A DNA stretch of 64,000 nt, taken from positions 1-64,000 of the forward strand of contig ADNK01001387.1 in NCBI GenBank assembly GCA_000320545.1. The letters run 5' to 3'. A program made the position numbers and the translations under genes. Position 1 is the first letter of the stretch. The number at the start of each line of letters is the position of its first letter. Below are positions 11,231-63,329 of this stretch, piece by piece. Below the pieces are notes generated by a model that saw nothing but the letters and a program-made list of their open reading frames with translations, had not been told where the DNA came from and made no database searches. Source of the DNA: Bigelowiella natans CCMP2755. Its lineage: Eukaryota > Protista > Cercozoa.

Positions 11231-11299
11231 AATAACAACGAGTTAGAGTATGTCATTACATCTAGACATTATAACATGCACATGAGCACACGGATCGAA

Positions 11300-21180: not shown

Positions 21181-21331
21181 CGACTATGGAAAGAAGCAAA
21201 ACTGGATGCGATGCCCATTCGAAATATCTTCAAACCAGAGCAAAACACATTGTCGCAAATGACAATTTCCATCCTTTCAGTACCAAGAATTGCCGTGTCG
21301 ATAAAGCTCACGCTCACGCACTGAGGACTTA

Positions 21332-33097: not shown

Positions 33098-33169
33098 ATG
33101 ACAAGGGTTAAAAGAAGATTACAAGTAGCACTCATTCAGCATCATGGTCGTTGGGGCCACAAATTAATA

Positions 33170-33750
33170 ACCCATTGGATCATGCTGTGTTTTGCAACAT
33201 GAAACAAGCACAAATGCGCCTTTCATCGACTTGCGCACACCGGTTTGCAATGTGCGTCTCATGGCACAAATTGCAGTCATGATGTTTGCACTGGTCCGCA
33301 TCAATGTTGCTCATTTGACACAAAAAACCACATTGAGACTAATTGAAAGCTTCACTAGAACGAACACACATGTGTGTGCCTGTCTAGCCATAGCAACAAG
33401 CTGACGACAGATGCACAGCTAGACAGACATGCCATGCTCGATGCAGGAGGACAAGGACAAGAACCACTCATTGCACATGCCGTGTCATCATCACACAACG
33501 CTGAACGCACGTGCGTGTGCACAAACAGCAGATTTTCCGTCACTGTGTCAGGCTGCAGGGCACTCTAGCACTAGAGCATATGCTAGCATTTCAAGATGCA
33601 AGCACGCTAGCACGCTAGCACGGCGACGTCTAGATCTAGATGATTGTCATGTGATGCTGGCATACGCACTTGTGCACACGTCTAGACGTGACACTGTGCA
33701 CATGTACATCCACATGGTCTCTATGGCTGTTAAGGGAAAATTTATTAGCA
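33170..33750. other. TpA-depleted intergenic island
   Basis: About 16 TA in 33181-33720 by hand count, about 11 of them in CTAG. Confidence 0.85.
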
Positions 33751-39215: not shown

Positions 39216-41136
39216 CTACGCACCAGCTGAATTTCGGAAAGGAGGCTTCGTGTTGTAGTCAATATTATTAAAAACCCTTTCAACCTGAGACCGAGAGGTT
39301 GTGTGGGGCCAATATAAATTCATCAAGAAGTCAACACCTTTTCTCGTTCAGACTTATCTAGCGGTTTACGGCCCTCCGCCTATGAAAAATATGCTTATCA
39401 AACCATCGAGTACATATTTCTATCCTATTTTCGTCAACAGGCGTTACGATACCATAATCTGTTCCTCGGCTTCGTAAACAGGATTGAAATTTAGCTTCTG
39501 AATAACATAATTACATAGTACGTTTAATTTCACCAAAATATCATTCTTCAACCAAGTCCTGTAACCTTTAAACTGGGTGTGTGAGGGGGTTTTAGATTTT
39601 TGTCTTCGATCTAATGCAGATGTAAGTCAGAGATGAAATTTTCCCTAAATAAAAGTGTGAAGAAATTACTTTTTTCCAATCCCAACTAGGAGCATTAGCA
39701 AAAAATGGATGATCTCGCACAGTCCTCCAAAATCCAACGTACCCTATAAGGAAATCCGTAACTCTCAAATTGTCAGTTAAGAGAAACATAGATTTTTTTT
39801 ACCTAGGCGCTTTTCTTCTCTGAAAGCGCATAATTTTGCAACAATGTCTCTGCAGTCATTTGATATCTTCTTCGGTAGTTTAGGAGTGGGAAAATCATCT
39901 TTTCTAACTTTTGATCTATCCATCAATTTCGGATCAAAAGGACTTCTCTTTAGAAGCATACGAGCTAGAGTCGCTCCAAATGTAAAAAAATCTGGCATAA
40001 ACCCGTAAGAATGTCTATTGATGACCTAAAATATAAATATATATATTTAATATATACACACACACATGTGTGCATATATCCTTTCAAACTTTCGTAACTC
40101 CACTAGACATCTTGTGGGGAGAGTCTAATAACCTCAGGAGCAACATATCCAGGTGTGCCACAGCATCCTCGTGTGCGAAGATGATGAGGAGGCGGGTAGC
40201 GTTTAGAAAATAGGTCGTTTCGATATCTCCTAAAATTTAAAGGTATAAATCCATTCAGATAGAAAACTAAAACTAGCACCTGTCTTTTTCCTGGAGCATA
40301 GTGGCCAGTCCCAAGTCAGTGATATAAAGATGCCCCTTTAAAGAAAGTCTGTTTTATAATAGTTTTCTTATTTTGTAGAGTCTTTATTACCTTTGCATCA
40401 AGAATACAATTCTCTGGTTTCAAATCCCGATATACGAAGTTCAATTTGTGAATTGCCTCTAGACCCAATAGAATTTCAGCAATATAGAATCGAGCCATAT
40501 GTTCTTCCATGGGACCATAATTTTCTGAAAATAAATACCTCGAATGAGGATACTCCGTTAGGGAAATCAGGCGAATACCTAAATAAAAGTTTAGATCTCC
40601 ACCCCTCAAGAAAGGCATGACAAGCACCAAATCCATGGACGACAGGAATGCGTACTGAATTCATCAAAGCTGCAAATCAAAAAACTTATTCCGCCCCGTT
40701 TTTTCGTAAATTCGCTACATGAAGTTTCACAACGAACGGAGATTTAACGCTTGCCATAACTGTACGTTCAACCCACGCTGCCTTCCAATGGCTTTCTTTT
40801 CTGATTAACTCCCTGAGATCCTTTCAGATTGATAAACCTTATTCATCCAATGAATGGGCTCGTTTAATACACGGTAATTGCCTGCAATTTCATTGCGTAG
40901 AAAACGCTGCTGTTCTCAATGTCATCGTATCGACTGGGAACTGGATCTTTTCGATCCTGCGCAGCCTTTACCTGCTCAAGGTTAACAACCAAGGTCGATC
41001 CCATGAAAAATCTTTGGATATTTTGCCTATGCACCTTACCAAACCCTCCTTTACCGACGGTGGAAAGGAGTGAAAAGTGTGACATGTCGACTTTTTCAAT
41101 GTTGATAGCTCCTTCGGAAGCCGCGCAGGCGCCCAT
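39216..41136 (-). CDS. AGC-group Ser/Thr kinase, STK32/YANK-like, with an N-myristoylation start
   Basis: [84 protein letters not shown] and a C-tail [19 protein letters not shown] that resembles STK32 LNCDPTFELEEMI..KPL. Confidence 0.88.
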
Positions 41137-41199
41137 TTCCCACAACCCGGTCAATTCCAATGGACAATTTCGTTGCGCTCCGCCACTCTCAGAGTTGAT

Positions 41200-43560
41200 T
41201 TGCTCGTCTGTCTGCGTGTTGCTTGTGTGTTAGGTGTGTAGGATGTGTGATTTGTTTTTCTTGAATGCAGTGAAGGACAGCACTAAATGGTAGTTTACTC
41301 ACCTACTACATGTAAGTTGATGATGATGTCCTCTCTCTCTCTCTCTCTTTCTCTTGCTCCACTTCGTTGTTGTTATGAGATGTGTGACTACTAGATCTAG
41401 AGTGAACAATGGACGATTTTGGGCAATTTCTGCCCACTGCGTTTCTGCCGCTAGCTTGCAACTGCGACAAACACTGCACGTGTCATGTCGCAAGTCGCAA
41501 GTCGCAAGTCGCAAACTCAGCTAGCAAACTCGAGACCCACATCGCAAATTGGTGCTGCCAATGACGGATTTCCTGGAGCACTCATTTTCCACAATGGACA
41601 CAGCAATGTGTTGTGTGCACTTTGCATGTCCATCATTTCCCACTGAAAACGACCAAACACAGAGGGTTGTGGGAAATGGGCGCCCACGCGGCATCCAAGT
41701 GAGCTGTTCTCAGTTGTCAAACTCAAAGAAGTCGAAGGTCCAGAAACGTGCACACTGCGCTGCACCAGTGTCGGACACAATGAGCACTTCACTTGTTTGT
41801 TCGTTCGTGTGTCACGTGCACGTTCCTGGGCTCGTTCACGATCCTTTCGCTTTGCACGATGACGCTTTGAACCACTTCATCACTGCAACAAAAGGCAAAT
41901 CGAGGGTGAAGGAGGCAGGTCACAATCGTGAACACAGCTGGACAGTGACGTGGTGTTGCGTGTCTGTTGTCACAAGTTTTGGCCCGACCTAGCGACGTTC
42001 TTCAGTTTCACGAGTCCCAGCATGCAAACGGAGTTTTGGTGACACTCCTGATGTGCTGTGACAACTCGAAGAGCCTTGACCCACCCATTGCTGTCAGAAG
42101 CATGATGGTTGGCGGTGCGCAATGCAGGCGACTGGCATGGTTGGGTGGAGGCAGGAAGGCAGGGGAGAACAGCTGGACAAGCAGCTGTCTCAGATCTGTG
42201 TTGATGATGACGTGACGTTTCATGCACGTCACACAATGTCAACATTCATCAAGGCGAAATCGCCTGAAGTGGTGTGCGCGCCGGCAGCGCTGAACATTGG
42301 CAGCGGGCGAAACAGCCCGATGACACGTGAGAGGCTGGCTCTCATTGGTCAACAGCCACTGCACGCATTGTCGCGGCAGTTCATCGAAGTCGCACATTGC
42401 ACTTCGGCTGCATTCTCAACTGTGTGCGTGTTGCTTGTCGCAGCCAATGAACGCCCGCAGATTGCTCTGGCGTTGCTGCTGCTGGTGCAAGCATGCACTG
42501 CGCGGTCTGGATGCAAAGCATTCCAACGCTTGCCATTGGCGCGCTGGTGGCAGTGTGCAACGAGAGAGAGTCGAACGTCAAGCACCAAACGTTGAGCAAA
42601 GCGTTGGTGCAAGGAACCACACGAGCAAGAACCACATGGGCTTGCACAAGCACGTGGCAGCGCCCAAATGAGAGTCATTGCGAGGAGTTGTGAGCACACT
42701 GTTGGTGTTGACACAACTGGCCAACACCAGCCTGGCAACGCCCATCACCAGCTCAACTGAGGGAGCTGAGGACGATGAACTGGCTGGCTGGGGCTGGGTG
42801 CCCTGTTCACCAATTGAAGGTGCAACCAGAACGCATCCCAGGTTTGGCTGACGCTGCTCACCTCGATCGGGTTCGCCAGTCTAGCAGTGGAAACCAGGAG
42901 CACTGAGATGGAGTCATCAAACTGGTGCACACACAGCACAAGCGTGTTGCAAGAAAATCGAGCTGAACAATGGTTCGACGAAAGCTCAGAACAATGAACA
43001 ATGAACAATGAACAAAGCGTTGATCAAATCCACACGCGCCAGAACCACGTGGGAGACAGAAAGGCCCTGTCGATTTCTTTGTCGGTCGAAGGCACACCAA
43101 AGGTGCCAGGTGGCCCCTGTTGAGCAAGGAACAACTTTTCTTTGGAGGCACGCTGGCACGGCATCGAAGGCACCCCAGTGACAACGTTGTGGGGAAAGGG
43201 CGGGGAGGGGGCTAAAAGGCAGCAAGCTTCAGTCAACAGGGCGCAACTCGAGAGTCACTCCAGTTTTTTTCGTTCGAGTTTTTTCAAGCGCCGTGCACCC
43301 AAAAATGATGACACACGTCAACGCTTCTGAAAGGCCATGGACTCACTTTTGGTTGTTTCCCGTTGAAAACGACCAAAACAATGAAACATTTTTTCATCAA
43401 ATCGCAAAACAACAAACACATCCAAGCCATTTCGTAATGCGTCACAGATTTGAAGAGCTCATGCACAGTTCGACGTTACATTTTGGGAGTTATGAATGGC
43501 CCTCAAAACACCAGTAAAGGAGACCAAACACACGTCGCACTGAGCTAGTGGCCACAACAA
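41200..43560. other. Strongest TpA-depleted island
   Basis: About 6 TA in 41401-43440 by hand count (4 CTAG, 1 CTAA, 1 GTAA at the edge), against on the order of 100 expected. CpG is abundant. Confidence 0.95.
41676..43000 (+). pseudogene. Probable intron-containing gene or pseudogene with Tyr codons converted to His or Cys
   Basis: ATG GGC GCC..AA followed by a gtgag donor. Intron-like gtgagcacac..caccag (~42691-42730). Protein-like fragments LDKQLSQICVDDDVTFHARHTMSTFIKAKSPEVVCAPAALNIGSGRNSP and LATPITSSTEGAEDDELAGWGWVP. No Tyr occurs in any frame. Confidence 0.4.
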
Positions 43561-43803
43561 CATGAGCTACAAGGTTTCTTGTGATCACAATCTTGTTGGT
43601 TCAAATGGCGAAAACCGCAAGTGCGACAAGCTCACTGCATGTCGTTAAAGTGAACTGGAATCACTATTTTCAACCGGATGCCTGTCCTCGCTCCCCCCGA
43701 CCATGCCACATGTCACCCGTTGATGACCAGCATCCTTTCCATGACTCCCGTCCTGTAATGCAGAAAAATACACACTGAGCCGCTTGCTCCCTGCGATAGC
43801 ACC

Positions 43804-46800
43804 ATGCGCTGGAACTCGGGGTTGTTTTGGATCCCATTTCTTGCTTGGTATGCACCTCGGCAAGGCGAAGGGGCAATTCTCTATCATCTTGCGTCCTACA
43901 GTAGTTACACACAGTCTCCCATCAAAACTCCGGTCTCCTCAAACCGCTATGATCAAACGTAAGTGCTGCATCAGTCACGAACTATCACGAGTATTCTATT
44001 ATCGTTATCAGCCACATGAAATTGAAGTTCTTGTAAAAATCTTTTGAGAAATTCTACGAGTATGAAGTACACAGTTCTCACAAAGACAAGACGAAATGTT
44101 TTTTCCTTTTCAGGTACATGTTCTGGATGACAGCTGAGTCGAATGGTCGGCAGAATCCAATACATGCGGGGGCTCGTTATGAGGGAACGATTATAATTGA
44201 ACCTGATTTGTCATTGACTTATTATTACGGGCCTGGGACTGGAGATTTGAAAACTAGTTTTTCCAGTGGCGCAGTGGTACAGTCTTATGATATTGCTGTA
44301 TTATTTGTAGCGTTTACCTGACGAGAAAAACTTGCTCTGACGTATAAATACGGTTTTATTACCAACAAGTATGCGAACTCAAAGTGTAGAAATGCATCAC
44401 ACATACATACACAGATTGACGTTTCATCGAATTTCATAATAGCGACGTGTGGTGGCAATAATGCAGATTACCTGGAATAAGTGGATGCACGTGGCCGTGA
44501 CTCGCCAGATCACATCGACACCAAGAAAGCTCTGCTGGTATATAAACGGAAACTTAACGGCCACACAAGATGCTCCATACGCAGTGGTAGTAGATATCCT
44601 TTAGGAACAATTTGCACGATGTCTGCCTTCCTACCAGTGGCGATCTAAACGCAAGAATAACCTTAATAATATTAAAAAAAAAAAAGAGAGAGAAAGTAGA
44701 GGTGGCTGTTGTGCATGCAGTCGCGGCTAAGGCTCAGGGGTTCATGTGAGACTAGGTATAAATCCTCGTGCATAAACTGGAAATACCTTTCAAAAGGCTG
44801 GGCAATGGTCGGGGAATGCAAATCATTTCATTGGTGGGGGGGGCTGGTTGAACGATTTCAAAGGCAAGATGCGAGGATTCTATATTTACGATGAAGCTTT
44901 AAGTCAAGCACAAATCCAGGCCGCCATGACTCGGGTATTAGCATGAGTACAGTTGTACACACAAATGCTAGAATATGCGTATAAAATTGAACTAGCGAAT
45001 AAGTCAACAATATAATATATAATTTGGAAAAAGAGCCTTCCTTCTGCTAATATGGCCTGTCTATCCGGTGATGGAAATCCGCCACTGCCATAAACCAGAT
45101 AGTTCAAAGAATACTTTCTAATGTTGTTTTTTGAACAAACATCACAGGACAGCCCATACGTAGCTCTGTCTGCAGTCGGTATGCGCTTTAGCTATATTTC
45201 AGTGGATACTAAAAATTAATAAATGCCTAGAAAAGGCAAACTCGCACATGGAGTTGAAAAACTGGAGCCATGACTCGCCCTTTTGCATTCATAATCGGGT
45301 GTTTTTCCCAATATTTTTTTCCAATATATGTACGTTTGAAATGCATAAGGAGTAGTGCAGTCTAAATGGGATTCTTCTCATCACCCTTCCAATGACAGTG
45401 AGAATTATCACAACTATATCCTTCTTTGCTAGGTGAAATGAGGCGGACTTCCGCGAATTCCAGCTCATGGAAGCACGTCTCACTCGCACAGGTAGGGATG
45501 TATTTGGACAAAATCCGTGCAAGCTTTTTCTTTCCGAGAGGCGATAGTTACGACGATGAAATGACCAAATGATAATCCAACGGGGTCGGGAGCTCGCTCC
45601 TGCGAGAAAGATTATTCTTTTATATCATCTGACTCGCGAGCATTAATCTCTATTCTTGCAAGTGACAACTGTTACGCTCGCGTATAGCTAGTGATATACG
45701 AAAACTATTCTGCTCTCATAACCAAAGCATATGCCCTCCCCCTCACACCCCGTCCTCCGTCAGAGCTACACCGACCCTATCTTAGTCATAGGGGACCCCA
45801 CAAACTTCGATTCGCGAATTTTCGGATGGAGAGTGAAGGACGTGGCGGAAAGCTCATTTGCGGTGAAGGGTTTCGGCGACGATGCTCACACAGGCAGCGA
45901 GGAGTTACACTATATAGTACTAGACAGAGGGGATCATATGATTGACGGTGTGCGGTTTCTCGCTGGTAAGACTACTGGGCAGTATAAATTCGAAGTGCAA
46001 TTCCATCCCCCCTTCAGGTCTGCTCCATATTTCATGCCGTTTATTCGCAGCTTCAATCAGGAAGGCTGGATGGAGGTGCGCGGCTACCAAATCACTGCGG
46101 GCGGCGCGTGGATTTCCATCAGCCCTGTTGAGAGCATCAGGAAAGGACCCTCCGCGGCAGTTAGTGAAACGGTTTCTTGGATTGCGTTTGAGCGCAGCCC
46201 TGCGACCTTCCGATCTGGCTCGTACGTGTCGGCTCTTGGGAGTTTCAACTCAAAGTATCAGGAATGTGCCCCTACCAATGGAAGTGCACCGACCACCAAC
46301 ATATCCATCTTAGGGGTAACTTCTCCCCAGGCCGTATTCATCGTCAAGATAATGTCGAGGAATGGGGTCGACCCTATCACTGCTCGTTGGATGCGAAAGG
46401 CGCCTAGCTCTCCATCCCTCGACGTTTGCTGGAATGAAGATAGGACATTTGACGATGACCTAGCCCACAACCTGGAGAGTTTTGTCGTGCTGGCTCAGAA
46501 TAGTAGTGCCGTAATTCATACCTCCTCGCCAACATCAGCGCCATCGATATCACCCACTCGCTCCCCCACTGTAAGTCTCGCGTTTAACAAGCCCACGGAG
46601 CAGTCAAGTACCGCACAAAACAGGCAATCTTCCAAGGCTGTGGATGGAAATCCAGATCCACGGATGGAAGAGGGATCATGCTCCCAAACCGAGAACGGGC
46701 ATGCGAACCCTTTCAACATCCTAAACAGCGAGGAGGTGCGTCCTGGCGTGAATGTCAACCGTGGGTCTGTGAGGACGGTAGGACCGTACATCCTCGAGTT

Positions 46801-47006
46801 CAAACTCAAAGTAATGGGAATTGTGAGTGGCTGGGGAAGCATCGTGCACTTCACAACCAAGGATAACTGCTGCAAGAACGGCGACCGAGTAATTTATCAC
46901 TCCCGTAGATCTAGACACAAATCTCTCTCTCTACCCCCCCGCACCTCCCCCCTTCTCTCTACCCCTCTCCTACACATAACTGACCAAACCCGATCCTGTT
47001 TGTTAA

Positions 47007-47072
<66 letters not shown>

Positions 47073-50000
47073 TTGTGTGTGTGATTTTTGTATTGATGAC
47101 GAGCCTGTGACTAAACCCACCTCCTCCACAGGTGCCTGGTATATGGTTGAAGCCAGGGACGAGCAAGCTCCACTTCCGTACCGGAACTAGCCCGAATAGT
47201 AACGATGGTTGCGACCCGACTGAATCCCTCGGCCTGAACCGCTACTACTCCATCAAGATGGAGGTTTATCAGAATAGCACCATCAAGATCTTCTACGATG
47301 GAAGGCAAGTGTGCAGCAGGACGATGTCCGGGGCCATCTACCCTGCAGGTAGCATCGTCACCGTATACGTTGGTGACCCCTGGCACACATCGCCCAACGC
47401 AATGCTGAAGGATCTGTCCTACCGCAAGAATGATCCGAACAAGCGCCTACTCGGCACTACCGATATGCTTCAAGGGATGACCTGGTGGAGAGTCAACTTG
47501 CTAGCGGTCTACCCAATCGCTATCGTGCGGGTCATGAGTCGAGGGGATTGCTGCGCCGATGAGCTCCGAGGCTTCCAAGTGCAAATCAGCAATAGCGTGA
47601 ATAATGCCAGCTACATCTGCAATCCCAGCGGGTAAGTGGCTCAAATTAGAATGATGTTGATGCTGATGTTGTGATAGCATTGTAGTAGCCATGATTACAA
47701 TAGTCATTAGTATTGCGACGATATCTGTATTGTTGGTTAGATGAAGGGCAGAGTTCTCTCGTTGTTCATTTTATGCTGGTGTTTGTATTGCTACTCTAAC
47801 GATCAGGGCTGGAGAAACGCCTCTAGCAGAGTGGTACTACGTCTCTTGTCCTTCGGTCTCTGGCGATGTAGTCACCATAATAAGAAACAACACAAATGCG
47901 TCTCTATCGCTCTGCGAGGTTGAAGTGTTTAGCCACGGGCACAACATCACCGTAGCGCCTACTCGATCTCCTATCACTTCCTCACCGACATCGTCACCTC
48001 TGACACAGTCACCAGCAACGATGACTCCCACATGTTCCCCCCGTACAGATTCACCTTCTTGCACCCCAACGACATCGATGCCTACTACGAGGGCGCCTTC
48101 TTTCTCCCCGACGAGCTGCTCTCCAACTCTCTCCCCATCGAGCCTCGCTCCGACAAGCCTCGCGCCAACCTCGTGCGCACCCTCCAGCCTCTCACCATCA
48201 ACAACATCTCCCACATCAATCTCACCTAGCACATTGGCCCCATCGAGCCTCTCTCCGGCGACGATATCTCCAACACTTGAACCCCCAAAGGCGGTATTAG
48301 CCCAGCTTAACGACGCCGTGACTGCTTTGGTCGTTACGTTCTCTCGGGAAACGAATGCCCCCTCCTTGAGCTGCGACGAGTTGTTGTCCTCGAGCACGAT
48401 AAGCTTGCTTGGGGCAAGCCCGAGCTGCTTATGGAGGTCGCTCTCTGAGCTACAGGTGAATATAGGTCCTGGTTTTCGGGTTGAGTTGGGAAGTCTCATT
48501 GGGGTGAGAGGAGGCAAGATAATGGGAATCGAGCCAGGCGCCAATCTCCATAAAGAATCACACGCATTGCCGCTACGACCACCTACCAATCCCCCAGCAG
48601 TCGTTGCCTATGCGTACGGGCCGGAATTTATCGGTGCGTATATAGTCGAATGATGAAGTCTGACTAATATGCTAGATTTTTTTGTCTTGATATGATGCAA
48701 AAAACGCACCCTCGATAATACCGCATCACCCTGTAGAAGTGACATTGTTTACTTGTTGCCATTGCATTGTACAGGTGGATGCGCCGCGACAGTCGATCTC
48801 CGAGCCACCACCTCCGGCGCGGCAGGAAAAGAGATATCGCTAGAATGGAAATTTGTCGGTTCCTCGGAGCTTGAAGCTATCAATGCGACCGCCCAGAACT
48901 CCCTGAGCAGCATCGATGCTGGCATTGCCTTGCTGCCTCCCAGATTGTTTCATCTCCATCGAGCTTTGAAAAACATTACTAGCACCACTTTGCACAGGCT
49001 GCTTGAGCTCCCCGCCTTGAATCTGACCATGGATCAACATTACGATTTTGCTGTGAGAGCAACGAACTGGCTCGGGGACAGCGGCATATCGGAGATATTT
49101 CGTCTCCGGAAGGTAAAAGGCTTGTCACGGCCTACAATCTTCATGCCTTCTCCACTACAGATCACCGTTCAGCGCTCCCGCAAGCTCGGCATCAAGGTGC
49201 GAGTTAGGCCACCTTCATGTATGGAGTCAAGGATGCGTATGGGAGTGCAGGGCCTATGGACTGTATTAGCCAACATCGGTACGTACCATTGTCACTTCTA
49301 CCGACATCATCCTTAGTGATGTAACTTAGGCTTGTCAGTGCAAATACTCGGTATAATTTGTAATGTTTTCAAACACATACCGATGCCAGAAGGGCGGGGA
49401 TTTTGTTGTTTAAGGTTTGGGGTGTTAAGCCGCAAGATTCCTCTGCCCTGTGTTCGCGGCTCGTAGCTGCGCAATATATACTTTCCGCTATTGTTATTAA
49501 CCTCTTCATAGTACTGCAAGCCCTTTGATCCTTTTATAATTACAATACTGATGTATCTTTTGATTCCCATGCTTATCTAATTATGGATTTTACATCGCCA
49601 GATAATATCAAGATTCCTGACCCGGAAAGTCTATATCTCTCACTGCCTCCCAATACCCTTAGCGTGGGTCGCGATTACCATTTTAGGCTCTTTGTAAAGG
49701 CTGTTAATGTGCTCGGGCAGGAAACAGGCAATGCTAATGTAACCTTCACTGTGCGAGTGAAGGAGGAACCGGTGGTGGCGAAACTACGAGGCGGTATAAA
49801 GAGGGTTGTTTTCGTCGGTGATAGTAGTGGCCACTCGACGGGTAGCGTCTTGAGCATTGATGCCTCAGGAAGTCGGGACCCCATTTACCCGGAGAACATC
49901 CTAATGTACAACGCAACAGTCTTTGACACTAGGACGGGGGTCAAGGCAGCCTCGGTCACTTCCGTACTACCCAAGATGCAATTTCGTTCAGAACGGCTTA

Positions 50001-52815
50001 CGGCGGGGAGCGAGTACCGAATTGCTTTAAATGTGAGCAGTGTGGATGGCTCTGGCAGAAGAGATACGAGATACGCCCTCGCCACCCAGTTGATCCAGAC
50101 GACATCGGAGAGAGTGCCAATATTCAGCATCACTTCCTCTGGCAAATCCTCGCTCGAGTCGTTTAACACCGATTCGAAGCTCTCTCTCAGCGCCGTGTTT
50201 AACCCCGCTGGGCCGTCTCCTCTTGCCGGTTCCTTCAACTGGTCATGGACATGGGATTCACCGAACTTTCCGGGCATGGACTTTTCCCAGCTTCTAACAC
50301 CTCCCGACGGCTCCTCGCCCAACTTGGTTCTAATGCCAAGAGCCTTGACTCCCGGCTACACGTACACATTCACGTTCACGGCTAGGTCGAACGCGACCGG
50401 CAGCGTGGCTTCTGCCTCGATAGCGATCGTAACGAATCTTCCCCCCTCCCTTGGCCAATGTACCATCACACCAAGCCAAGGCATGGCTTTGATTACCGAC
50501 TTCCGACTGAGTTGCCACGGCTGGAGTGACACCGACCTTCCCCTACAATATCGTTTCGAGCAGGTAAGTTCTCCTGGGGGCACCGCCCTTTCAACACCAG
50601 CTCTCGCATTGCCTACTACGCAGCAGGGAGGAGGGGAGGAGGAAGAACCAAGCTACTTCCAGCTTTGTGACTGGAGGTTGCTGGAGGAATGTGTCACTCA
50701 GCTTCCTGCACCAGAAAAACCGGGGGCACTGCTAAATGTACGGGCAACAGTTGCCGACTTTTTAGGCGCTAACGCGTACACAAATGTGGTCGCAAATGTC
50801 ACCCAGGCACGGGACTTGCAGATAGCAGATGTGACTGGGAGGCTGCTCGATTCGTTCGGCTCTGGGGACCTCCAAAGCCTCGCGGTTGGAATCCTGGGCT
50901 CGATGTCCTACCTTAGATCACCGCTAGGCAAAGATTCAAACAACGCCACTTCAGTTGGCAAGTTTCGCGAGGAAATTCTTGGAATGCTCGCTACGCTATC
51001 ACCAGCTAGAGGAGATGGATCCGCCAGGCAGCTGAGTCCTTCAAACGCTGCCTCATTGTTAGCCATTGTAACAGATTTTACAAGTCCTCAGGAACTTACT
51101 GGATCAGCCGTGGGGTCTGCAATTTCACTACTTGATGACATAAATTCCAAGCTCTTAGGTCGAAAAAGCAACGATAGCATTGATGGCCAGATGCTCGTAA
51201 CAACAACGAGTGCTCAGGCAGAGCAGGAGGAGGAGGAGGAGAGTGATGGGAACGCTGCTGAGACTGTTCGAAACTCGTTAACTACGTTGTCCAATCTCAT
51301 CTCTGCCACAGCCGCATACAAGCAAGATCAATCAGCGTTGCCGTTATCGTCGGTTTCTTCGTCAACATCAGGTCGCTTGGAGTCGGTCGCTTCAGCATCT
51401 GCTTACGCTCTCGCCGCGCGAACCATGCCTGGCGAGAAAATCTCCCGAGCGAAAGCAGCGTCTGCCCCAGGCCGGGTTCCAATTGAACTCGCTTCGATTA
51501 AGCTTAGCAGCACCGAGGAAGAAACTCTTATCGACGGACTCCTCACCCGCGTCGTTCTCCCCCCAATTTCCTCACTGACATCGCTAATTGGAAATGAAGA
51601 AAGGAGCGGAGTAGGTGCGACGTTCGTCGTCTCCGCTGTAGGATTTCAAGGCTCAGCTGTTTTCCCCGTCACGAATACAACGTTGGCCGATGTTAACGCG
51701 AATTCCACCGCAGATGACAACATGAAGACGAGGCTAAAGAGTAGCAGCGGCCTCTACGTCGGAGGCTTGATAGTGATCGAAATTCGTAATGAGAGCGCAG
51801 GGGGGGGGGCTCTCAAGATCACAAATGCGTCCAAGCCCATTCGCTTTGAAGTTCCTGCAGGTCAAAACCTCTCACACTTCTCTGGCGGTAGGGTGGCAAT
51901 ACGGGACATGATGGTGCCTGTTTGTATGTACTGGAACGATGAAACCAGGCACTGGAGTCGTGATGGCGTCTGGGCCCTGAACTTTTCCGAGACTACTAAC
52001 TCAACAGTATGCGAAACACGCCATCTTACCAGCTTCACCAGCGATGCAGCCTTTAGAGTTGAGGTAAAGAACAACACCTTTCCATTTTATGTCAGTGCGC
52101 TTGTTCAGCGATAGCTATCAACAGCTTTCACCACAGCAAGGTCATCATCATCCTTATTTTTTGCCTCCTAAATTACAATCAGGTAAACCAGATCTCAGCA
52201 GAGGACGTCAGTTTCGATGCGTTGGACCCGACACAGAATCCAGTTATGGGCCTCCTCATTGCAATCGTGGGCTGCTTCCTGCTAGCTCAACCGCTCGTGT
52301 GTGCCCTAGACCATAGAGATGAATTCAGCACCAAGATTGGCTCAGCGAAAGAAACGCAGAGGATCCAAAATGAGAAGGATTTTTGGATGGGCAAAAACCA
52401 CATCCAGTATATCAAGGTACAACTGAAAATAGAAGGACAGTATTTCATTCATTTCGATGGTTAATGTCCCTAGTCGCCGTCGTATTGGCAGTAATTTTTA
52501 CCAGTGGGGTTTAGAGCAGGGGGGGGAGAGCAGAGCAGGCCTTTAGTGTTCTTTTTAAGAGAGGCAAAATGGCGAAAGTAGTGTCCTCTTTTCGAGATTG
52601 TCGTCAGTGTGTTTAGACGACAGCAGCGGGAAGGAGGAGGAGCTAGACATTAGTATAACTCACAAATCGATGATGGTTTCAACTTGCTATTATGGCAGTC
52701 GAAGGCTGATCGCGAGTGGAAAGGTTTTGCTCAAGCTACAATATGGGGAATACGACAACGCCATCCATGGTTCAGTGTCCTATTTCATCATCCAGGTGTA
52801 CAAGTCTATGAGCGG

Positions 52816-52870
<55 letters not shown>

Positions 52871-53353
52871 CGTTTTTAAGTGAATGCACTTGTACATAAG
52901 AGATAATGATCTCTGTAGAGCTGGGGACGGTGTCGGTCGAATCTGTTTCACATCATGTTCAGCTGCAGCATTATCAGGATTATTGCCATCATCCGGCATT
53001 GCCTACAGTTTCACCTTCAATCGTCTATAATCATGCGAAATCGTAATCGCAGGAGACTTCATGAATTCGCAGAAACGCTCGTGGGTTCTTCTCATTCTGA
53101 CACTCAACGCATCGGTTGTGTGCGCCCTGCTCGCCGGGACAAACCAGAGGCTAGGTGTTCTCCAAGGAAACGTTGCGATGGCAATTGTCGCTAGCACGCT
53201 ATCCTTCCCGATTCCTTACGTTCTGTCCTCGATCTTCTTGCGAGGAACGCCGGAGGAGTTTCGAGTCAAGTGGAAACGATCAAAGTAATACTTGAGATTG
53301 GTTGTGAGGGAAAGCGTGTAGCACTCGAACGAATACATGACATACACGCACCG

Positions 53354-53389
<36 letters not shown>

Positions 53390-55692
53390 TGCATGCATAC
53401 CTACAAACACGTGCGACATTGAAAATGTTGATAATGTTCCACCCTCTCCTTTTGGAAACCACCACATCATCATCATCAGGCTTGAGCAGATGCTCCCATG
53501 GCTTGTTTTCCTATTTGTGGTTTGTGGGAGCGACGCCTACCAAGCTAATCTGGAGGATGAGAATAAGGATCAAGAGGTCAGGAGTTCTCACTTCCCTTTT
53601 TTGTATATTATATATAATTTGTGTATCTTCTTTCCTGATAGTTGTTGAGGGGGGTTCGAGTTTGTTTGTTTTCAACAGTAGTAAAAGGGTGGAATAGTAG
53701 TTAGAGTCTACGAACCAAACTAGAAATCAAAGATTTTCTTTCAACGAAATTGCATGAACATTCCCCCCTTCCCTCTCGATAGGTGAACCTGGACGACGGC
53801 GGTGAGGAGGCTGGGGAAGGAGGGGGGGACGGAGACGTCGAAGTTAAGGATAATGACCAAGAGAACAACTTGTCTGATCAAGAAGGTGCTGTTGCGGCTG
53901 CTGTTGTTTGATTTTAGCAATGGCTTGTGAATAGTCATGGCGTTTAACGTTTGATTTTCCGGATATGAATAGACAAGGATGACAATGAAGACGAAAAGGA
54001 GACCACCTTGCGGCATGGAAACACGGCGGGTCTTACAAGCTCCTCGACAGTTTTCGCGGCCGGCGGTGCTGCAGCCGGTACTGTTGGCGGCTACAAGCTC
54101 GGGGGGGGGGGGAATAAACGGACTTTCACCCCTCGCCAGAGAGAAAAAGCGATCGGGCGCAGAAAAGAGCCCCGCAGTTCAAATACTTCTCACCTCAAAC
54201 AGCCAGTCCATTCACCTGCAACATCGATGCTGGCCAACAGGATGAAAAGACCTGCAGGAGCTGTGAATCCGATGCACAGTTCGTTCCAAAACGTGCTAAA
54301 AGACACTGATCTAATGAGCCTGGGAAATGACAGCTTCTCGGCCAGTAGCCTAGCCTGGGCAGAGGAAACTAGGAGCACGAACATCAATTCTTCGAAGGCC
54401 TCGCACAACTTCGCACAAATATCCTCCTGCTCTAATGACAGCATGCTGAAAGGTCGCCGAGGCAGCATCATGATGCAGGCCACACGTCAAGCTACATTTC
54501 GCACGCAGGAGCGTAGATATCAGCCTTCAAAACTTGGCGTTGTGCACGGTGTTCCTATAACTGAGATCGGAGCTTTGGAGTGGCATTCAAGAGACATTGC
54601 AGCGGTATGTGTAGAGACAGAAGGGCCACGCATTCTTCTTATTCATTTTGCATGGCATGTTTGATCATTAACGATTAACAGAGGTCAACTCAAAGACAGG
54701 TCGAATAATTGGTTTTAACCTCTCTGTATATACTTCATTAGGTATTATTCTGCGTGATAATCTGTCTTGGATTGTCGTTTCTGCTCATTTTCCTTTCATG
54801 GGCAAACAAAGAATCTAACGGGAAGACTTGGCAAATCTCGATGCTCGCCATGCCACAAGATCTCTTCTTCCGCACGTTGGCAATATTGTTTTTCGAGGCC
54901 GTCTTTACTATGCCACTGCACTGCTGTAGTTGCTATTTTTGCCTTTTCTGTTGTGGTAACAGTGAAAAGGTCTTGAAACCTACAAGGATCAAGTCAAGGC
55001 TGTCTGCAATTCTAAACTGCTCGGAGCTTTCGTTCTCAGTGAACAACGGCCTAATTGTGGAATCAGTATCGAAGGCCGGGGCGGATAAGGGAATCCAGGT
55101 GGGATGGCGATTGCTCGCAGTCAACGGCACTCTCATCCTAAATGCCATGGAGCTGAGGGATATCTTGCAGCGTGTGTTTAAGACATACAAAGAATACGAG
55201 GTTGAGTTTGTTGCTAGCGTTGAAGCTGCGAGGGAGATCTTGCGAATGTATGCCCCGGATGAGTGCGAAAATTGGCAAGAAGAAGGAGCGGTGGATATGA
55301 AAGACCATAATACCACCTCGTTGAATAGAAACAAAAGAGTAGGGCCGGACGGACACAGTAGTGTGAGCGAGCTAGTGAGTGATACGAGCGACTCTGCAAT
55401 GGTCGATTTAGATTACGCGCTTCAGGACAACCTGGACTTCATTCTACCATTTGGATGTAAGCAACCGAAGCAGCAGCAGCATCAACAACAACAGAACTTA
55501 CAAGGCTCGATCGGGCGTTTGAGTGCAATTAGTCTTGGGCTCCAGAAGAACACTGCTATAACCCGTGTGTCTCTACGGAAGCATGAAATGGCAAAATTTA
55601 TGGGTGTGGAGGAATCCGAGCTATCGGTATCTAGTGTTCGGGAAGAAGGAATATCCTCTTCATCCGATGAGGAGCCTGGATGGGGAAATTAG
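43804..55692 (+). CDS. Polycystin-1/REJ-like cell-surface receptor: signal peptide, LamG/ConA, 3 H-lectin-like repeats, split F-type lectin, Ser/Thr/Pro stalk, REJ, GPS, about 5 TM, PDZ
   Basis: MRWNSGLFWIPFLAW. LamG motifs WMHVAVT..WYING and FKGKMRGFYIYDEALS. REJ motifs LVLMPRALTPGYTYTFTFTA and NLPPSLGQCTITPSQGMALITDFRLSCHGWSDTDLPLQYRF. GPS motif CMYWNDETRHWSRDGV..TVCETRHLTSF. Polycystin-like HPWFSVLFHHPG..MNSQKR. PDZ-like GLIVESVSKAGADKGIQVGWRLLAVNG. Confidence 0.85.
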
Positions 55693-55719
55693 GCATGCCT
55701 TCAGAATGATGCAATGAAA

Positions 55720-56600
55720 CCTTTTGAACCAATTTTACTTCATGAAACTTTAGCGCATTGATGATCTACGTGCCTCATTTTGGCATTGCACATACATGCT
55801 GCATCACCAGCAATAACACAACTCAAGTTCATTCAGTTTGGTTGCGGCAGAGAACTAGTGCAGCGCGGTACGGTTGTTGGAAGGCGTCAAGGCAGTTGCA
55901 GTTCGTGGTTTGCATTAGTGACTGGACATTGCATTGGGGAAAATGCTTGCACGCATGTGTATCTAGACATTCGCTAACTTGTGCTAGCATCATTCGATGG
56001 TGGCGCAGCGCAGCCACACACTTCAAAAAATGAAACAGACGCTGCAGCAACCACTTGGGGTCGTTGCATGCGTCCACTCGAGCTTGCGCGCGCACGTGCA
56101 TGAAGGATCGCTTGTTTGCACGTCTTGTCTGTTGCTCGGCTGGCGGGTGCACATGTTCGCAGCGAGCAGTGCGACAACTTTGTGGCGGGACGATCGAACA
56201 ACCATTCAATGAACAATTGCTAGCTTGCACGTAGAAGAGGCTTGTTGTTCATGTGTGCACAAGCCATGCACAATCTTCAAGCATGCATGCTTCTAATCCG
56301 AAGCAAACTCAAAATGAATGAAATGACATGTGCGATCGAGCGTGCACATTGGATGTGGCAAAACTATGTCGACTTTGAGGAGACGTGCACATTCATCATG
56401 GACAATGACGCAATGCATGGTGTGCATCATGCATGCAACATTGCTGTGTCCATCATCAGCAGCACCCAGTGACAACGCTAGAACGATGCATCGTACCGTG
56501 ATGATACGACATTCAAATGACATCGTGTGCCAGTGTGCAATGTGCATAATGTGCGCGGCAAGAACGCAGAGCATGTAATCGCGATCCACATCATTGCTGA
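55720..56600. other. TpA-depleted intergenic island
   Basis: No TA in 56041-56220. Survivors are largely in CTA or TAG context. Lies between the two convergent receptor and channel genes. Confidence 0.85.
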
Positions 56601-56657
56601 TTGAAAGATTTGTCGGCCGCCATTTTCTTCGCTGAAATCCTCAGATCGGCAGCTCGG

Positions 56658-59600
56658 TTACTCTTTGAGCACGGGCAAATCATATCCTTTCGCATCAAAC
56701 TGAATTGGTGATCTCCGTTTAGGGTGGCTTGACACCAGATTTTTCAGATTCACGAAGGAACGGCATCTTTCACTTCCTTGAACCTTCGCTCGAGCTCGAC
56801 TTAGGAATGCGCTCGTCATGCCGATTTCCTTGGCTTCCAGCAAGTGCCTTCGTAGTGCATCTCCGTCTTCATTTAAAATGGCTTTGCGTATGTTGACTAT
56901 AATAGCCTGCTCGCGCTCCATCATCGCGATAATCTCTTCTTGTTCATTCTGATATTTTCCCCGGGCGAACGGAGCTGTTTCAATCTTGTTGTTGGTGTCA
57001 TCACCGACGCGGTCTAGTTTACCTTCATGATTAAATCTCCTTTTGTTGTCCCCATACCTTCTCCTCTGCCATGGTCCGTTACTATTTCCCTGTTCCTGCA
57101 TCACTTGTGACGCCAGTTCCACAGAAGCAAGCATGCCAGAGATGTTGTCTAATTTCGCACGAATATCCCCCCATGTAACCTCACAAGCCACAGCGAACTC
57201 CGTCAACTCTTTTGACAATGCCTTGGTGCTGATATGGTCAAACCCCTCTAAAGTTTGACCCTCATGAAACTGTTCGTAGGCTCGGTCGGAAAGCCATCGT
57301 ATTTCTAGGTTAATAATCAAGCCAGCTGCGGCGAACTTGCCCTCTAACTTTATTCGGGACGCCGCCTGATTGAAGCGATGGTTCATCATGGCGATTAGCC
57401 AGTTGAGAAGCATCACAGTAGAGATAACTGTATAAAGTACAAAGAAAAATGTGCCGAGGTAAGGCTCTGAGTCACGGATGGAGTTCCAAAGCTCCAGCTC
57501 ACCCACCAGTACGACATACAATTCTACGAACGCAGAAAATATCGAGTGAAACTCCGTAATAGAGTGCCGGAAGAGACAGTAGAAGACCACGACGAAAGCC
57601 ATATGTATTACTAACCAAACGATACAAAAGATGCCGAAGGCGGAGGTAAGGGACTTCATTGTTGCAATCTGCCCCCCCCAAGTCTCTTGCACCTCTAGGT
57701 AAGAGAACACTCTAGTGCAAGCTAAAATAATAAGAATCGACTGGAACGCTAAACAGACAGGAAACGAAGCCGGATCGTTTGCAAAAACGAGCACAAATTT
57801 TGCGATCGTAAGCGCCAAAGTAACCAGTGCTTCCCCAACGGTCTGATAGTCGGTGTAGATGAATGTTTGCCAGCCTTCAGCCCGCCCTCCGTGGTAGGTC
57901 TGAAATAGCTGTACCGCGCCATAGGCGACAATGATTAATTCACAAATGAAATAAGGAACACTAAGGTACCCAGGCGTATCCTTCAGATACCCGTCCAGAT
58001 TCTGAAACTGGTCAAGATATAAAATCCCAACAACTAGCGACGCCATGTAGAGGGTGTACGTGGCAACTGTAATCTGGAAGATGCTCATTGCGTACTGTTC
58101 CCATTTCATTTGGATAGCGTGGTCAACCAGCGGGTGACTGATCAGGTCCATACACCGGTGCTCCAACATCTTCCGAATTGGCTGCGGCTGTGTCATTTTG
58201 GGAGGGCACACTAACTGGACATCATACTGTACCCACTCAGTTATACCCCATAGCCTCTGTCTATGCACCGCTGTGTCTAGAGCTACCATGGCTGCTGGTT
58301 CGTAGTCCTCAATCAAAGAAATCAACTGTAACCTGCAGCAGCCAATAGAATGATGATGTCAATGATGATGATGATGATGATGATAATGATGATGACGATA
58401 ATAATCAGGTTTTTATTGATTGAAAGGAAATGGAGAAAGTGAGGAATCGTCATATAAATGCAGAAGGTTATCGCTATTAAACAGATGTTCATAAACGAAC
58501 CTTCTGTCAGCAAGACTACACCCGCCTTCGCTGACCAGCATACGAATGACATCCATATACGGGGAATGCTCGACCTGTTAAGAAATAAAGTCGCTGCTTT
58601 CGTCATTCGGTATTATTCCGTTGATTTCATCATCATTTTGTTCGTCCAAATGATTGAAATTATGATATATTCACTCACCACAAATGGACAATATATGCCT
58701 GTTTCATCTTATCAATAACCTGGTCTTTAGGCCCTGTTGCCGATAGTTTTCTCTTCTTTTTCTTGTCGTCGTCGTCATTATTCCTCTCCTTCTGGCTAGG
58801 GTCTATATATGTTTTCTCATAGCTACGGTGGTGCCAGGCAGATGCTGCTTTTTGTATCGGAAACAAACCACCCCGGTCACGCACCATCCTATTTGAATCT
58901 GTAGGACCAAGATCAGATCAGATCACCAGATGCTACTTTTCTCATTAAAATTCTTTCGCAAAATATAATGCTGTGTTGACACTCTTTTCCTCAGCACAAC
59001 GTCGTCCTTGTCATCATCAACGTTGATATCATTACTATCAAAATGGACAAAGACTCCAACATTGAAGCACATCATCAGTACTACAGTAGTAAGCTTCGGC
59101 CTGCTCGCATGCATGCAAGATAAGACAGCGGTGATGGGTGGTCAATATTCAACTAATCGGCTATTACTACTACTACTACTACTACTACCATTTTGGAGGA
59201 GTAGGAAGCGAACGACTTGAACTTGTCCTGCCTGAGAGGCCTCGTGTAACGGTGTACCTGCTTCAGCATCTTCGCCGCCTTTTAGCAGTCAATGGAGTAA
59301 AGAATTAGTGGAAGGTATGAGGTTAGAGGTGATGAAATGATGATAAGGACGACGATGACGAATAGATTCCTGGGCTCGTAATCTTAGATGCTATGAGGAG
59401 GAAGGAGGAAGGAGAAAATATATATGTGACAACAACGCACTACATGTGATATGTTCATCAAGACTATCGAACATACTTACCAGCGTTAACGTCGGCGTGG
59501 TGAGCGATGAGCATTTGCACAATTTCTAAGTGGCCTTCTGAGCAAGCGTAGTGAAGAGGTGTCTCCCCACGATTATTCTCTTTGTTGACAAGCGCCTTAT

Positions 59601-60975
59601 TTTCTAAAAGATACTTGACAACTTTCTTGTGGCCTGCTCCAGAGGCAGAATGCAGGGCAATGGATTCGTTCTCCGCCTCCTGGTTAACATTGGCACTATT
59701 GGTACAAAGCAGCTTAACGATCTCGAGATGACCCTTTGTGGCAGCCACGTGAAGATAACTACGCCCAGCTGTGATGGAAATCCCAGAGATAAGTTGCTCG
59801 CGAAGTGCAAAGAGCGCATCACCCATTATACTTCCCATTTTAACTGACTCCTTCACTGTAAGCTGCTTTCTCACCTTTTCGATCTCCCCTTTCGCGACCA
59901 TATCATAGTGGATGTCAACGGCATTTTTCTGCCCGAAGTTTATAGGCTCTGAGCGTTTTAGCCTGGCCTTGAAATCTTGTGCCACTATCTCCAAGGGGTT
60001 AGGTTGTATCTTGGTTTCTCTTCTTCTGATCTCAGCTGGATTCATCATCCTCCTCCGTGAAGAATCATCATGTGATGATGAAATATTGAAATGCCTTCGA
60101 AGTTCAGGATTACTTCCTTCAGAATTCTCCTCGCGTGGGACGTTCACAGGCACAACAACGGACTTTCGACTAATGAAACCCAGAAATTGTTGAAAGATTG
60201 AACTCCTTCGCCGGTTATGTCCGTCTTGACGCTCCTCCTTTTTTACTGCTAAGGAATGAAGTTTTGGTGATGAAAGTTTTGAGCTGATCCTCTTAACCCG
60301 TTCTCGAAATTTTTTCGGATGATATTTAGTAGCACCCTCCTCTTCAGTGTTGACTCTTCTCATCTTCGAGGTCGCTGTTCGGGTCGTCGTCGTGTTGGAC
60401 GCAGTAGTATTCGAGTAAGGTGACAACGTGTGATTATTATATTTACTTTCCTTGATTATTGAACCAGGACTTGGAGCTCGAGGTATTGTACGTCTATCTA
60501 CGCTACTAGGAATTTTCTTTAAACTTAAAGAAGCATTGGGGGTAAATTTTGTGCGTTGTAGTACCCCATCATTGGAATCAAGGCGAGGGGAAATCCTCGC
60601 AGATCTGTCGTCGTCCTTCGTGTTAGCGATCTTCCATCCATATATCCTATCATTATCATTCTCTTTCGAGGTAACAGGCTGACCGGGGTGCTTCACGAAT
60701 CCCATGTTGTTGTTGTTGTCTTCGGGTAACGACCTCTTACCCCGTTGCTTGTTCTCGTTGTCTCCAGAAAACGACGAATCATCAGGCAATTGAATGATGG
60801 AAGTGCTCTTTACAATATCTTTAAGCTGCTTTCGAGTTTGAGTTCCTCCCCCTCTCTTCCTTCCTGATGCGGCGGATAATCCCGACGATGATGATTCCGA
60901 ACCTGTTGTAACAACTTCACTAGTTCGTTTTGTCGGTCTTCTTGACACAGTAGATCTGGAATTATCTGCCTTCAT
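56658..60975 (-). CDS. Ankyrin-repeat TRP-type cation channel (TRPA/TRPN/TRPV-like)
   Basis: Ankyrin repeats SYLHVAATKGHLEIVKLL, ALHSASGAGHKKVVKYLL and GETPLHYACSEGHLEIVQMLI. Pre-S1 LISHPLVDHAIQMKW. Six TM segments with pore FHSIFSAFVELYVVLVGEL and S6 FFFVLYTVISTVMLLNWLIAMMNHRF. Confidence 0.9.
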
Positions 60976-61199
60976 TCTGTACGTTGGAACAACAGAGAGA
61001 GGCTTATTTTATGTGAACGTGGCGATCATAGTATTTCCTTCTCGTAATATACACTCTGCCTTCCCCAGCAAGTCACATCAGTCATCCACGCTCATAAGGA
61101 CGCCGACGTCTGATCGTTACCATCGTCGAAAATGAATGGATAATTTCAGAAGTTGATGTTGATTGCTTGTCGCAGGATCAAAATATCCTTCATTGAATA

Positions 61200-63325: not shown

Positions 63326-63329
63326 AAAG

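Follow-up and report, generated by a model that had tools for sequence, protein, structure and literature searches.

The 64-kb window analyzed here, which is the whole stretch of 64,000 nucleotides taken from contig ADNK01001387.1, belongs to nuclear scaffold 30 of the alga Bigelowiella natans and contains an island of about 2 kb in which the dinucleotide TpA (TA) is almost absent outside the tetranucleotide CTAG. The TA-depleted island is a real feature of this DNA. Most probably, it is ordinary non-coding nuclear DNA of B. natans that has been saturated by the TpA-specific hypermutation of this species.

TpA depletion in the island

An exact dinucleotide count, which the first-pass annotation had proposed as a check on its own hand count of about six TA in 2,040 bp, revealed six TA between positions 41401 and 43440. 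The base composition of this segment (A 526, C 524, G 557, and T 433) predicts 111.6 TA, in line with the earlier estimate of about 100. This corresponds to an observed/expected ratio (rho) of 0.05, compared with a background rho of 0.80 in the window. The background ratio would give 89 TA (Poisson P(≤6) = 1.4e-30). CTAG accounts for four of the six, as had been claimed (TA at 41452, 41522, 41990, and 42882), and the other two, at 43213 (CTAA) and 43435 (GTAA), are both located at the 3' edge. The longest run without TA in the island is 892 bp. The description of the sequence as complex and non-repetitive also held, apart from two 7-bp microsatellites with four units each.

CA (225, rho 1.67) and TG (190, rho 1.61) were overrepresented in the same segment, and the ratio for CG was 0.80. 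The GC content reached 0.53 in the island versus ~0.39 in the flanks. The ratios of AA, TT, and AT were 1.22, 1.36, and 0.71, respectively; AA and TT were in excess, and TA alone was gone.

The depletion culminates in a saturated core, for which the background density predicts 5.8 CTAG and 118 other TA (~124 in total) and GC-matched densities predict 5.4 and 69, whereas 4 and 0 were observed. The left edge of the island is knife-sharp, with the final non-CTAG TA at 41389. On the right, the core passes into a shoulder of partial depletion and gradual recovery, after which the remaining 1.85 kb of the intergenic spacer (43881–45730) has a normal TA content (rho 0.85). The introns of the flanking genes also have a normal TA content (rho 0.77–1.30), which shows that the TA-depleted islands of the window are discrete patches. 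A larger mutated domain masked by selection on exons was rejected for the same reason.

The claim that the stop codons TAA and TAG are nearly gone was confirmed: the plus strand contains 2 TAA, 4 TAG, and 46 TGA, and the minus strand contains 0, 5, and 45, respectively. It had also been claimed that no frame encodes Tyr. This was true of TAT and TAC on the plus strand and of TAT on the minus strand (0 each); a single minus-strand TAC is the exception.

Conversion of TA to CA and TG

The surplus of CA and TG in positions 41401–43440 amounts to 125, and the deficit of TA is 86 if calculated from the present composition or 134 if calculated from the background TA density. Neighboring dinucleotides shifted as well (AT −40, AC +32, GT +23, and GC +23). 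These shifts, together with a CA+TG surplus that matches the TA deficit, indicate that TA was converted to CA or TG rather than avoided. Since AA and TT are undepleted, a general weak-to-strong drive is excluded. The saturation of a context-specific mutation, which the first-pass annotation had suggested, is thus supported by the mass balance and by the TpA-only de novo hypermutation published for B. natans.

The core contains 197 CA and 180 TG, the order of which is random (runs-test z = −0.01; −1.5 to +1.5 in the other islands of the window). In background DNA, the order of CA and TG is clustered, with a mean z of −1.9. In the long term, conversion took place on either strand at each TA, whatever happened to the neighboring TA. 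Strand-coordinated patches of the kind produced by R-loops or single-strand processivity were rejected, because the runs test showed a random order and CA and TG were similarly frequent. The random order also speaks against a one-strand mechanism such as transcription-coupled exposure.

When all six islands of the window were considered, the density of TGCA was 17.5 per kb versus 4.8 in the background, and that of CATG was 10.1 versus 5.0 per kb. The greater rise of TGCA suggests that inner positions were converted more often than outer ones, if both words originate largely from TATA. Words of the ACGTGCA/CACGTG type are also strongly enriched in the islands.

Other islands of the window

Scanning of the 64 kb with a 300-bp sliding frame revealed five more islands at 10.3–11.25, 20.0–21.35, 33.15–33.55, 55.9–56.85, and 63.0–63.55 kb, with rho TA of 0.24–0.33, CA and TG ratios of 1.4–2.1, and a GC content of ~0.5 (Table 1). 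Altogether, the TA-poor and CA/TG-rich signature covers ~10% of the window. A blastn search of the main island against the window with a word size of 9 gave no match to any other island and returned only (CT)n microsatellites and a single inverted match. A repeat family was therefore rejected, as the six islands are unrelated in sequence at this word size.

The fifth island occupies the whole interval from the poly(A) site that ends the polycystin-like gene (plus strand) to the stop codon of the ankyrin/TRP-like channel gene (minus strand), i.e., it lies between two convergent 3' ends. The sixth island overlaps the end of Bn88333, an open reading frame (ORF) at 61865–63325 that is 100% identical to EP00466_Bigelowiella_natans_P017990 (jgi/Bigna1/88333, model estExt_fgenesh1_pg.C_300178); this match places the window on nuclear scaffold 30 of B. 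natans. The last 150 nt of the coding sequence (CDS) of this gene have a rho TA of 0.10, and its 3' untranslated region (UTR; 63326–63498), which is transcribed according to transcript contig L002, contains a single TA, a CTAG. Since a coding end and a transcribed 3' UTR carry the signature, hypermutation, or at least the trace that it leaves, extends beyond silent or foreign DNA. A specificity of the islands for 3' ends was rejected, since the main island is situated between two gene 5' ends.

Table 1. Positions of the TA-depleted islands and of neighboring features in the 64-kb window.
Feature	Position	Strand	Details
Saturated core of the main island	41401–43212		4 TA, all CTAG; rho TA 0.04, rho CA+TG 1.68, GC 0.54
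Right shoulder with partial depletion and gradual recovery	43213–43880		13 TA in 668 bp; rho TA 0.28, rho CA+TG 1.41, P = 1e-8
Surviving CTAG sites in the core	41451–41454, 41521–41524, 41989–41992, 42881–42884		Each reads CTAGC on the plus strand
7-bp microsatellites	41487–41514, 42989–43015		4 units each
Second island	10301–11250		rho TA 0.24, CA 1.81, TG 1.56; CTAG 3 (3.0 expected), other TA 11 (62 expected)
Third island	20001–21350		rho TA 0.28, CA and TG 1.85; CTAG 9 (4.3 expected), other TA 14 (88 expected)
Fourth island, small	33151–33550		rho TA 0.25; CTAG 3 (1.3 expected), other TA 4 (26 expected)
Fifth island	55765–56657		19 TA (5 CTAG) in 893 bp; rho TA 0.33, rho CA+TG 1.78, P = 3e-10
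Sixth island	63173–63850		Final 150 nt of Bn88333 CDS, 3' UTR, and downstream DNA
Separate TA-free run, 5' UTR and first codons of the kinase gene	41107–41230		124 bp; 0 TA versus 8.5 expected, P = 2e-4
TA-normal block between TA-free stretches	41231–41400		12 TA in 170 bp; rho 0.87
Inverted copy of the kinase start-codon region, inside the island	41664–41707	+	Partner arm 41105–41148
Third, partial copy of the 17-nt kinase-start core	43186–43202	+	
Left neighbor, 5' part of a host protein kinase gene	40319–41136	−	Pkinase E = 1.2e-11 on 40319–40660 (−)
Right neighbor, polycystin-like host gene	45731–55764	+	REJ 7.5e-36, GPS; stop 55690–55692, poly(A) site ~55764

Exemption of CTAG

The surviving TA of the six islands are strongly biased toward CTAG, which accounts for 27 of 91, compared with 184 of 3937 (4.7%) outside the islands (Fisher P = 3e-14) and 7.3% in GC-matched non-island DNA (P = 2e-7). 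When TA sites were divided according to their flanks, those with neither C before nor G after showed a survival of 0.13 (36 observed, 283 expected; 0 of 79 in the core), and those with one of the two showed a survival of 0.20 (28 observed, 141 expected; 0 of 39 in the core). Sites with both, i.e., CTAG, had a survival of 1.30 (27 observed, 20.8 expected; 4 of 5.8 in the core). CTAG is the sole tetranucleotide in which G follows TA on both strands, and the outer flanks of the surviving CTAG sites showed no further specificity, being the same as in the background.

We also compared the islands with the 206 de novo TpA events on scaffold 10 that are listed in Table S2 of the published mutation accumulation study (Mettrop et al., bioRxiv 2026, doi 10.64898/2026.01.13.699255). 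Tallied by hand with the strands pooled, they comprise 67 events of the TAT class, 67 of TAA, 52 of TAC, and 20 of TAG. With site availability taken from the 64-kb window, the relative rate of the TAG class is ~0.47 (20 of 206 events versus ~20% of sites, binomial P = 2.5e-5). If a half-site mutated two-fold slower, only ~30% of CTAG should survive in the islands taken together, and much less in the core. That CTAG survives in full therefore implies recognition of at least a tetranucleotide, or zero activity where both flanks are unfavorable, or a protecting factor at CTAG.

Several other properties of Table S2 were observed. On the reference strand of scaffold_10, A>G at TAG occurs 3 times and the mirror change, T>C at CTA, 17 times (binomial P = 0.003); a strand-symmetric process would give equal numbers. 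Four T>C events are found in an ATG or ATT context and not in TpA, whereas the text of the preprint places all GC-biased events on TpA. In addition, some events of the same line form runs of the same type, e.g., five successive A>G in line 19 within ~2.8 kb.

Coding potential and sequence searches

The first-pass annotation had explained the overlapping His/Cys-rich ORFs of the island by the loss of stop codons, and the present results agree with this. The longest island ORF has 171 codons, while dinucleotide-preserving shuffles gave 195 ± 43, and 72% of them reached 171. Ten stop-to-stop ORFs of the island had no match in Pfam and no credible match in PHROGs, and ten ORFs of the other islands had no match in Pfam. 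No relative of the 171-aa ORF was found among 5.8 billion proteins. For a 155-aa ORF, a phmmer search among 1.84 billion representatives returned no relative, not even a model of the ORF itself, and IMG/VR scans with two island ORFs returned nothing. Thus, no ORF with a homologue was detected, and the accumulation of ORFs is a chance-level by-product of stop loss.

Saturation changes only ~5% of bases, so searches with the sequence as it stands should still detect a coding relic. Moreover, the conversion of TA to CA or TG creates no in-frame stop, because an in-frame TGA can be derived only from an in-frame TAA, and an intact gene would consequently have remained open. Since the longest ORF is below the shuffle mean, the island did not represent an intact gene at the time of mutation. 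A coding relic was rejected on the basis of the Pfam, PHROGs, protein, and IMG/VR searches, none of which gave a credible match. The architecture of a mobile element was also rejected: neither terminal repeats, inverted or direct, nor a target-site duplication were found. The island likewise matched no Rfam family and contained no tRNA.

There are no public contigs on record that contain the island ORFs or the REJ exon. As a probe for transcription of the island, an exact 22-mer was absent from JGI metagenome contigs; this is uninformative, as a 24-mer of the first coding exon of the kinase gene was absent too, so that these transcriptomes are not covered by the collection.

Genomic context and internal repeats

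The main island forms the left half of a 4.6-kb divergent spacer between the protein kinase gene (minus strand) and the polycystin-like gene (plus strand). The kinase has a Gly-rich loop and a catalytic-loop motif. Its N-terminal exon encodes the Gly-rich loop and the N-terminus MGACAAS, and the start codon at ~41136 faces the island. Genes with REJ/GPS, PKD/ion-transport channel, ankyrin, RCC1, and BART/CSD/NYN domains, all of eukaryotic type, were identified in the window; the gene models are incomplete in its left half. Transcript contigs L001 and L002 are 99–99.8% identical to the window. Their comparison with the genome revealed no TA-type differences and no mismatch at TpA. L001 shares its C-terminus with the polycystin-like gene and ends in a poly(A) tail, which fixes the poly(A) site. 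It lacks 9 nt (three codons) of the last genomic exon of this gene at ~54920–54930, a difference that reflects either an indel between strains or a minor alternative splice. Further downstream, a PKD/ion-transport ORF (56661–58358) and an ankyrin-repeat ORF (59467–61008), both on the minus strand, probably form one TRP-like channel gene (56661–61008). This gene is convergent with the polycystin-like gene; two polycystin-related genes are thus paired tail to tail.

Between the kinase gene and the core, the separate TA-free run holds the left arm of an inverted repeat. The TA-normal block that follows includes a (CT)12 microsatellite and a tract with a strong TG bias, and it sets the sharp left edge of the island; it may have been inserted or expanded later, or it may be a protected segment. 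Of the 12 TA in this block, nine are preceded by C or followed by G.

The two arms of the inverted repeat were aligned over 44 columns, with 37 identities, 5 transitions, and 2 transversions (score 63.5 versus a shuffle maximum of 31). The same repeat was picked up as a 42-nt match by the blastn search with 9-base words. Among the seven positions at which the arms differ, one CA-versus-TG pair was noted. Transition-tolerant scoring detected no homology to the kinase start beyond 44 nt, and the idea of the island as a decayed copy of the kinase gene was ruled out by this end of homology. The 17-nt core of the kinase-start motif has three matches in the window at ≤3 mismatches (0.1 expected by chance), all of them around the main island. 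A second motif of 22 nt is present twice. A link between the small inverted duplication and the targeting of mutation would be speculation.

Relation to the hypermutation described in B. natans

In mutation accumulation lines of B. natans, 231 of 302 nuclear de novo point mutations fell in two regions, an integrated giant virus and a virophage (Mettrop et al., 2026). Almost all mutations of these regions were A->G or T->C changes at TpA, i.e., the hypermutation was restricted to TpA and led to TpG or CpA. Genome-wide, the authors identified 124 clusters that were depleted of TpA and enriched in CpA and TpG. Of the genes in these clusters, 81% were unannotated, and transposon and viral Pfam domains were enriched among TpA-depleted genes. 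An ADAT2-like deaminase, Bn78255, was named as a candidate, and the process was proposed to be a defense aimed at foreign DNA (Mettrop et al., 2026).

The island resembles these clusters in species, dinucleotide signature, raised GC content, lack of annotation, and discrete domain structure. With rho TA of 0.05 and rho CA+TG of 1.64 [(225+190)/(135.1+118.2)], it passes the per-window thresholds of the cluster rule (a rho of at most 0.43 for TpA and of at least 1.52 for CpA+TpG in at least three consecutive 1-kb windows). The depletion is far more complete than in the active giant-virus insert of the preprint, since TA makes up 0.3% of dinucleotides in the island (0.2% in the core) versus 3.3% in the insert. 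Unlike the published clusters, however, the island is below the 3-kb threshold and showed no viral or transposon homology. The island also differs from them in lying between ordinary expressed host genes, which its sister islands overlap. Hypermutation has thus already been described in B. natans, and the island is a sub-threshold, more extreme, and unusually complete example of it. The immunity of CTAG, the random choice of strand, and the host-like spacer and UTR targets go beyond the main text of the preprint as modest increments with a direct bearing on enzyme specificity and targeting; that text mentions neither CTAG nor flanking context, and random strand choice is absent from it.

Several points weigh against assigning the island to this process. 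Three consecutive qualifying 1-kb windows were obtained in 0 of 1000 phases, and two in 578. The cluster definition was missed because the island is too short for the 3-kb rule, and the island is very unlikely to be among the 124 listed clusters. In the part of the supplement that was available, the only scaffold_30 entry is C>T at 857622, which is not a TpA event. This argument is not a strong one, as few de novo events are expected at a saturated island with only 6 TA targets, 4 of which are in the spared CTAG. In the accessible portion of the gene lists, one scaffold-30 model (number 155) appears, probably outside the window. Furthermore, the genomic comparison for B. natans covered the 64-kb window, within which no unmutated paralogue, allele, or orthologue was found, and the pre-mutation state is derived from statistics only. 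The defense hypothesis expects foreign DNA, and none was detectable with Pfam, PHROGs, protein, and IMG/VR searches. Finally, the deaminase chemistry is a candidate only, and modification of T on the opposite strand would leave an identical pattern.

Alternative explanations

The island may be the relic of a foreign element, such as a transposon, a virophage-like element, or a giant-virus fragment, that was hypermutated. This is a special case of the preferred explanation with an added claim about origin, and we consider it possible but rather doubtful. The enrichment of transposon and viral Pfam domains in the preprint and its mostly unannotated cluster genes are consistent with such an origin. 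The knife-sharp left edge resembles an insertion junction, and the GC content corrected for the TA deficit (~0.48–0.50) still exceeds that of the flanking spacer (0.39–0.41). However, the ORFs as they stand had no Pfam, PHROG, protein, or IMG/VR relative, and neither terminal inverted or direct repeats, nor a target-site duplication, nor a second copy in the 64 kb was found. The frame of an intact gene would have survived the conversion without new stops, but no island ORF is longer than expected by chance. In addition, the island contains a copy of the start region of a host kinase, and other islands are found in the 3' UTR and at the coding end of a host gene. A foreign origin, which is a hypothesis of the preprint and no strict part of its cluster definition, was not borne out by the searches, the termini, or the ORF length.

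A much less probable explanation is selection against TA, i.e., functional avoidance of TA (UA) in a regulatory or RNA-producing spacer, e.g., on account of UA-specific RNA cleavage, TATA-like sites, or the insertion of TA-targeting transposons. In its favor, the main island is flanked by the starts of two divergent genes and short motifs recur in it, a small island coincides with a transcribed 3' UTR, and UpA is mildly underrepresented throughout the window (rho 0.80). However, no known constraint strips ~120 of 120 TA in all contexts but CTAG over 1.8 kb. The loss of TA is offset one-for-one by CA and TG, with neighbor shifts as expected for transitions. Moreover, the signature is common to six unrelated sequences, and mutation of precisely this kind has been directly observed in B. 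natans.

Two further scenarios are highly improbable, the first being contradicted by the context and strand data and the second by the dinucleotide counts. According to the first, a double-stranded transcript underwent ADAR-like A-to-I hyper-editing, followed by reverse transcription and integration. The A-to-G change with a preference for 5' U does resemble ADAR, an analogy drawn in the preprint as well. However, no reverse transcriptase, long terminal repeat, poly(A) tail, or target duplication was found, TA followed by G is the spared context here, and CA and TG alternate randomly (z = −0.01), without the single-strand blocks of an edited transcript. In the published lines, changes accumulate in place in single-copy DNA.

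The second scenario is GC-biased gene conversion at a recombination hotspot or the acquisition of DNA from a naturally TA-poor donor, for which the higher GC content of the island (0.53 versus 0.39 in the flanks) could speak. GC bias should reduce all W-W dinucleotides, but AA (1.22) and TT (1.36) are in excess and TA alone is gone; the change is confined to TA and the dinucleotides that arise directly from its conversion, unlike that in a CpG-island-like sequence. As for a donor, we know of no genome with a TA ratio near 0.05. CTAG is usually the rarest tetranucleotide in TA-poor bacteria, whereas here it is the only survivor, and no homologue was found among 5.8 billion proteins.

Comparison with known mutation and editing systems

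In fungi, repeat-induced point mutation (RIP) converts CpA to TpA, requires duplicated sequence, and produces TA-rich and AT-rich tracts full of stop codons. The island is similar to RIP targets in that dinucleotide-context transitions of a defense-like kind have saturated discrete tracts and wrecked reading frames. The direction is the opposite, since conversion of TpA to CpA and TpG has left a TA-free, GC-richer sequence with few stops. The islands are also single-copy within the window, apart from one 44-nt inverted copy. With its TA ratio of 0.05, CA/TG excess, raised GC content, and lack of a second copy in the window, the island does not have the properties of a RIP tract.

APOBEC/AID enzymes cause C-to-T changes, as a result of which GC falls, and the changes form strand-coordinated runs. 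ADAR editing acts on RNA, is not restricted to UA, and favors a 3' G. The island shares with APOBEC3/AID and ADAR products an enzyme-driven, context-dependent transition hypermutation of particular nucleic acids, but differs from them in the A-to-G change in DNA, the rise of GC, the random strand choice, and the sparing of 3' G. The random CA/TG order (z = −0.01), the spared 3' G context, and the absence of retro-element features in the island are likewise not those of an ADAR retro-copy.

ADAT2/ADAT3 and TadA deaminate A34 of tRNA, which follows a nearly universal U33; several natural ADAT substrates carry G after the edited A. Deamination of an A that follows U fits the requirement for a 5' T in TpA, and the preprint also cites ADAT2 enzymes that edit DNA. 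In contrast to these substrates, a following G is disfavored in the islands, and no gene for such an enzyme is present in the window.

Proposed mechanism and implications

Most probably, the A of TpA is changed to G on either strand, by which TA becomes TG or CA. Repetition of this event over a discrete patch of ~2–2.4 kb has cleared all TA outside CTAG and raised the GC content by ~4–5 points. Loss of the TAA and TAG stops and of Tyr codons in all frames has then left chance ORFs rich in His, Cys, and Gln. An ADAT2/TadA-like deaminase that acts on adenine in DNA is the probable agent, and targeting may act on a domain, guided by chromatin or RNA, rather than on sequence homology. From the published 206 TpA events at 6169 TpA sites in 3132 line-generations, a rate of ~1.1e-5 conversions per TpA per generation was obtained for the active region. 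If the rate were similar here, the loss of >97% of sites in the core would need ~3.5e5 generations (on the order of 3–4e5).

A more tentative suggestion, which we regard as unlikely rather than likely at present, is that TpA hypermutation is not confined to foreign DNA and also acts on small, sharply bounded intergenic and UTR patches of the host. Its targets may then include a spacer between divergent genes, another between convergent 3' ends, and the coding end of an expressed gene with its 3' UTR; double-stranded RNA formed locally, or the state of the chromatin, could mark them. At least a tetranucleotide may be read by the mutator or by a protecting factor, because CTAG is fully immune while TAG half-sites mutate only about two-fold slower.

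Site-specific A-to-G hypermutation of nuclear DNA has so far been reported for one eukaryote in one preprint. In an island that has reached the end state, the TA that remain are instructive: the complete survival of CTAG either limits the sequences that the mutator can prefer or hints at a factor that protects CTAG specifically. In the annotation of the B. natans genome, stop loss accounts for a class of spurious ORFs rich in His and Cys and of gene models that carry no annotation. Islands in host spacers and a host 3' UTR, with no viral or transposon trace, bear on the hypothesis of a defense against foreign DNA. If hypermutation does extend to such host patches, the process would shape the non-coding DNA of this lineage in general, leaving an enzyme footprint that can be read, and would be more than an antiviral defense.

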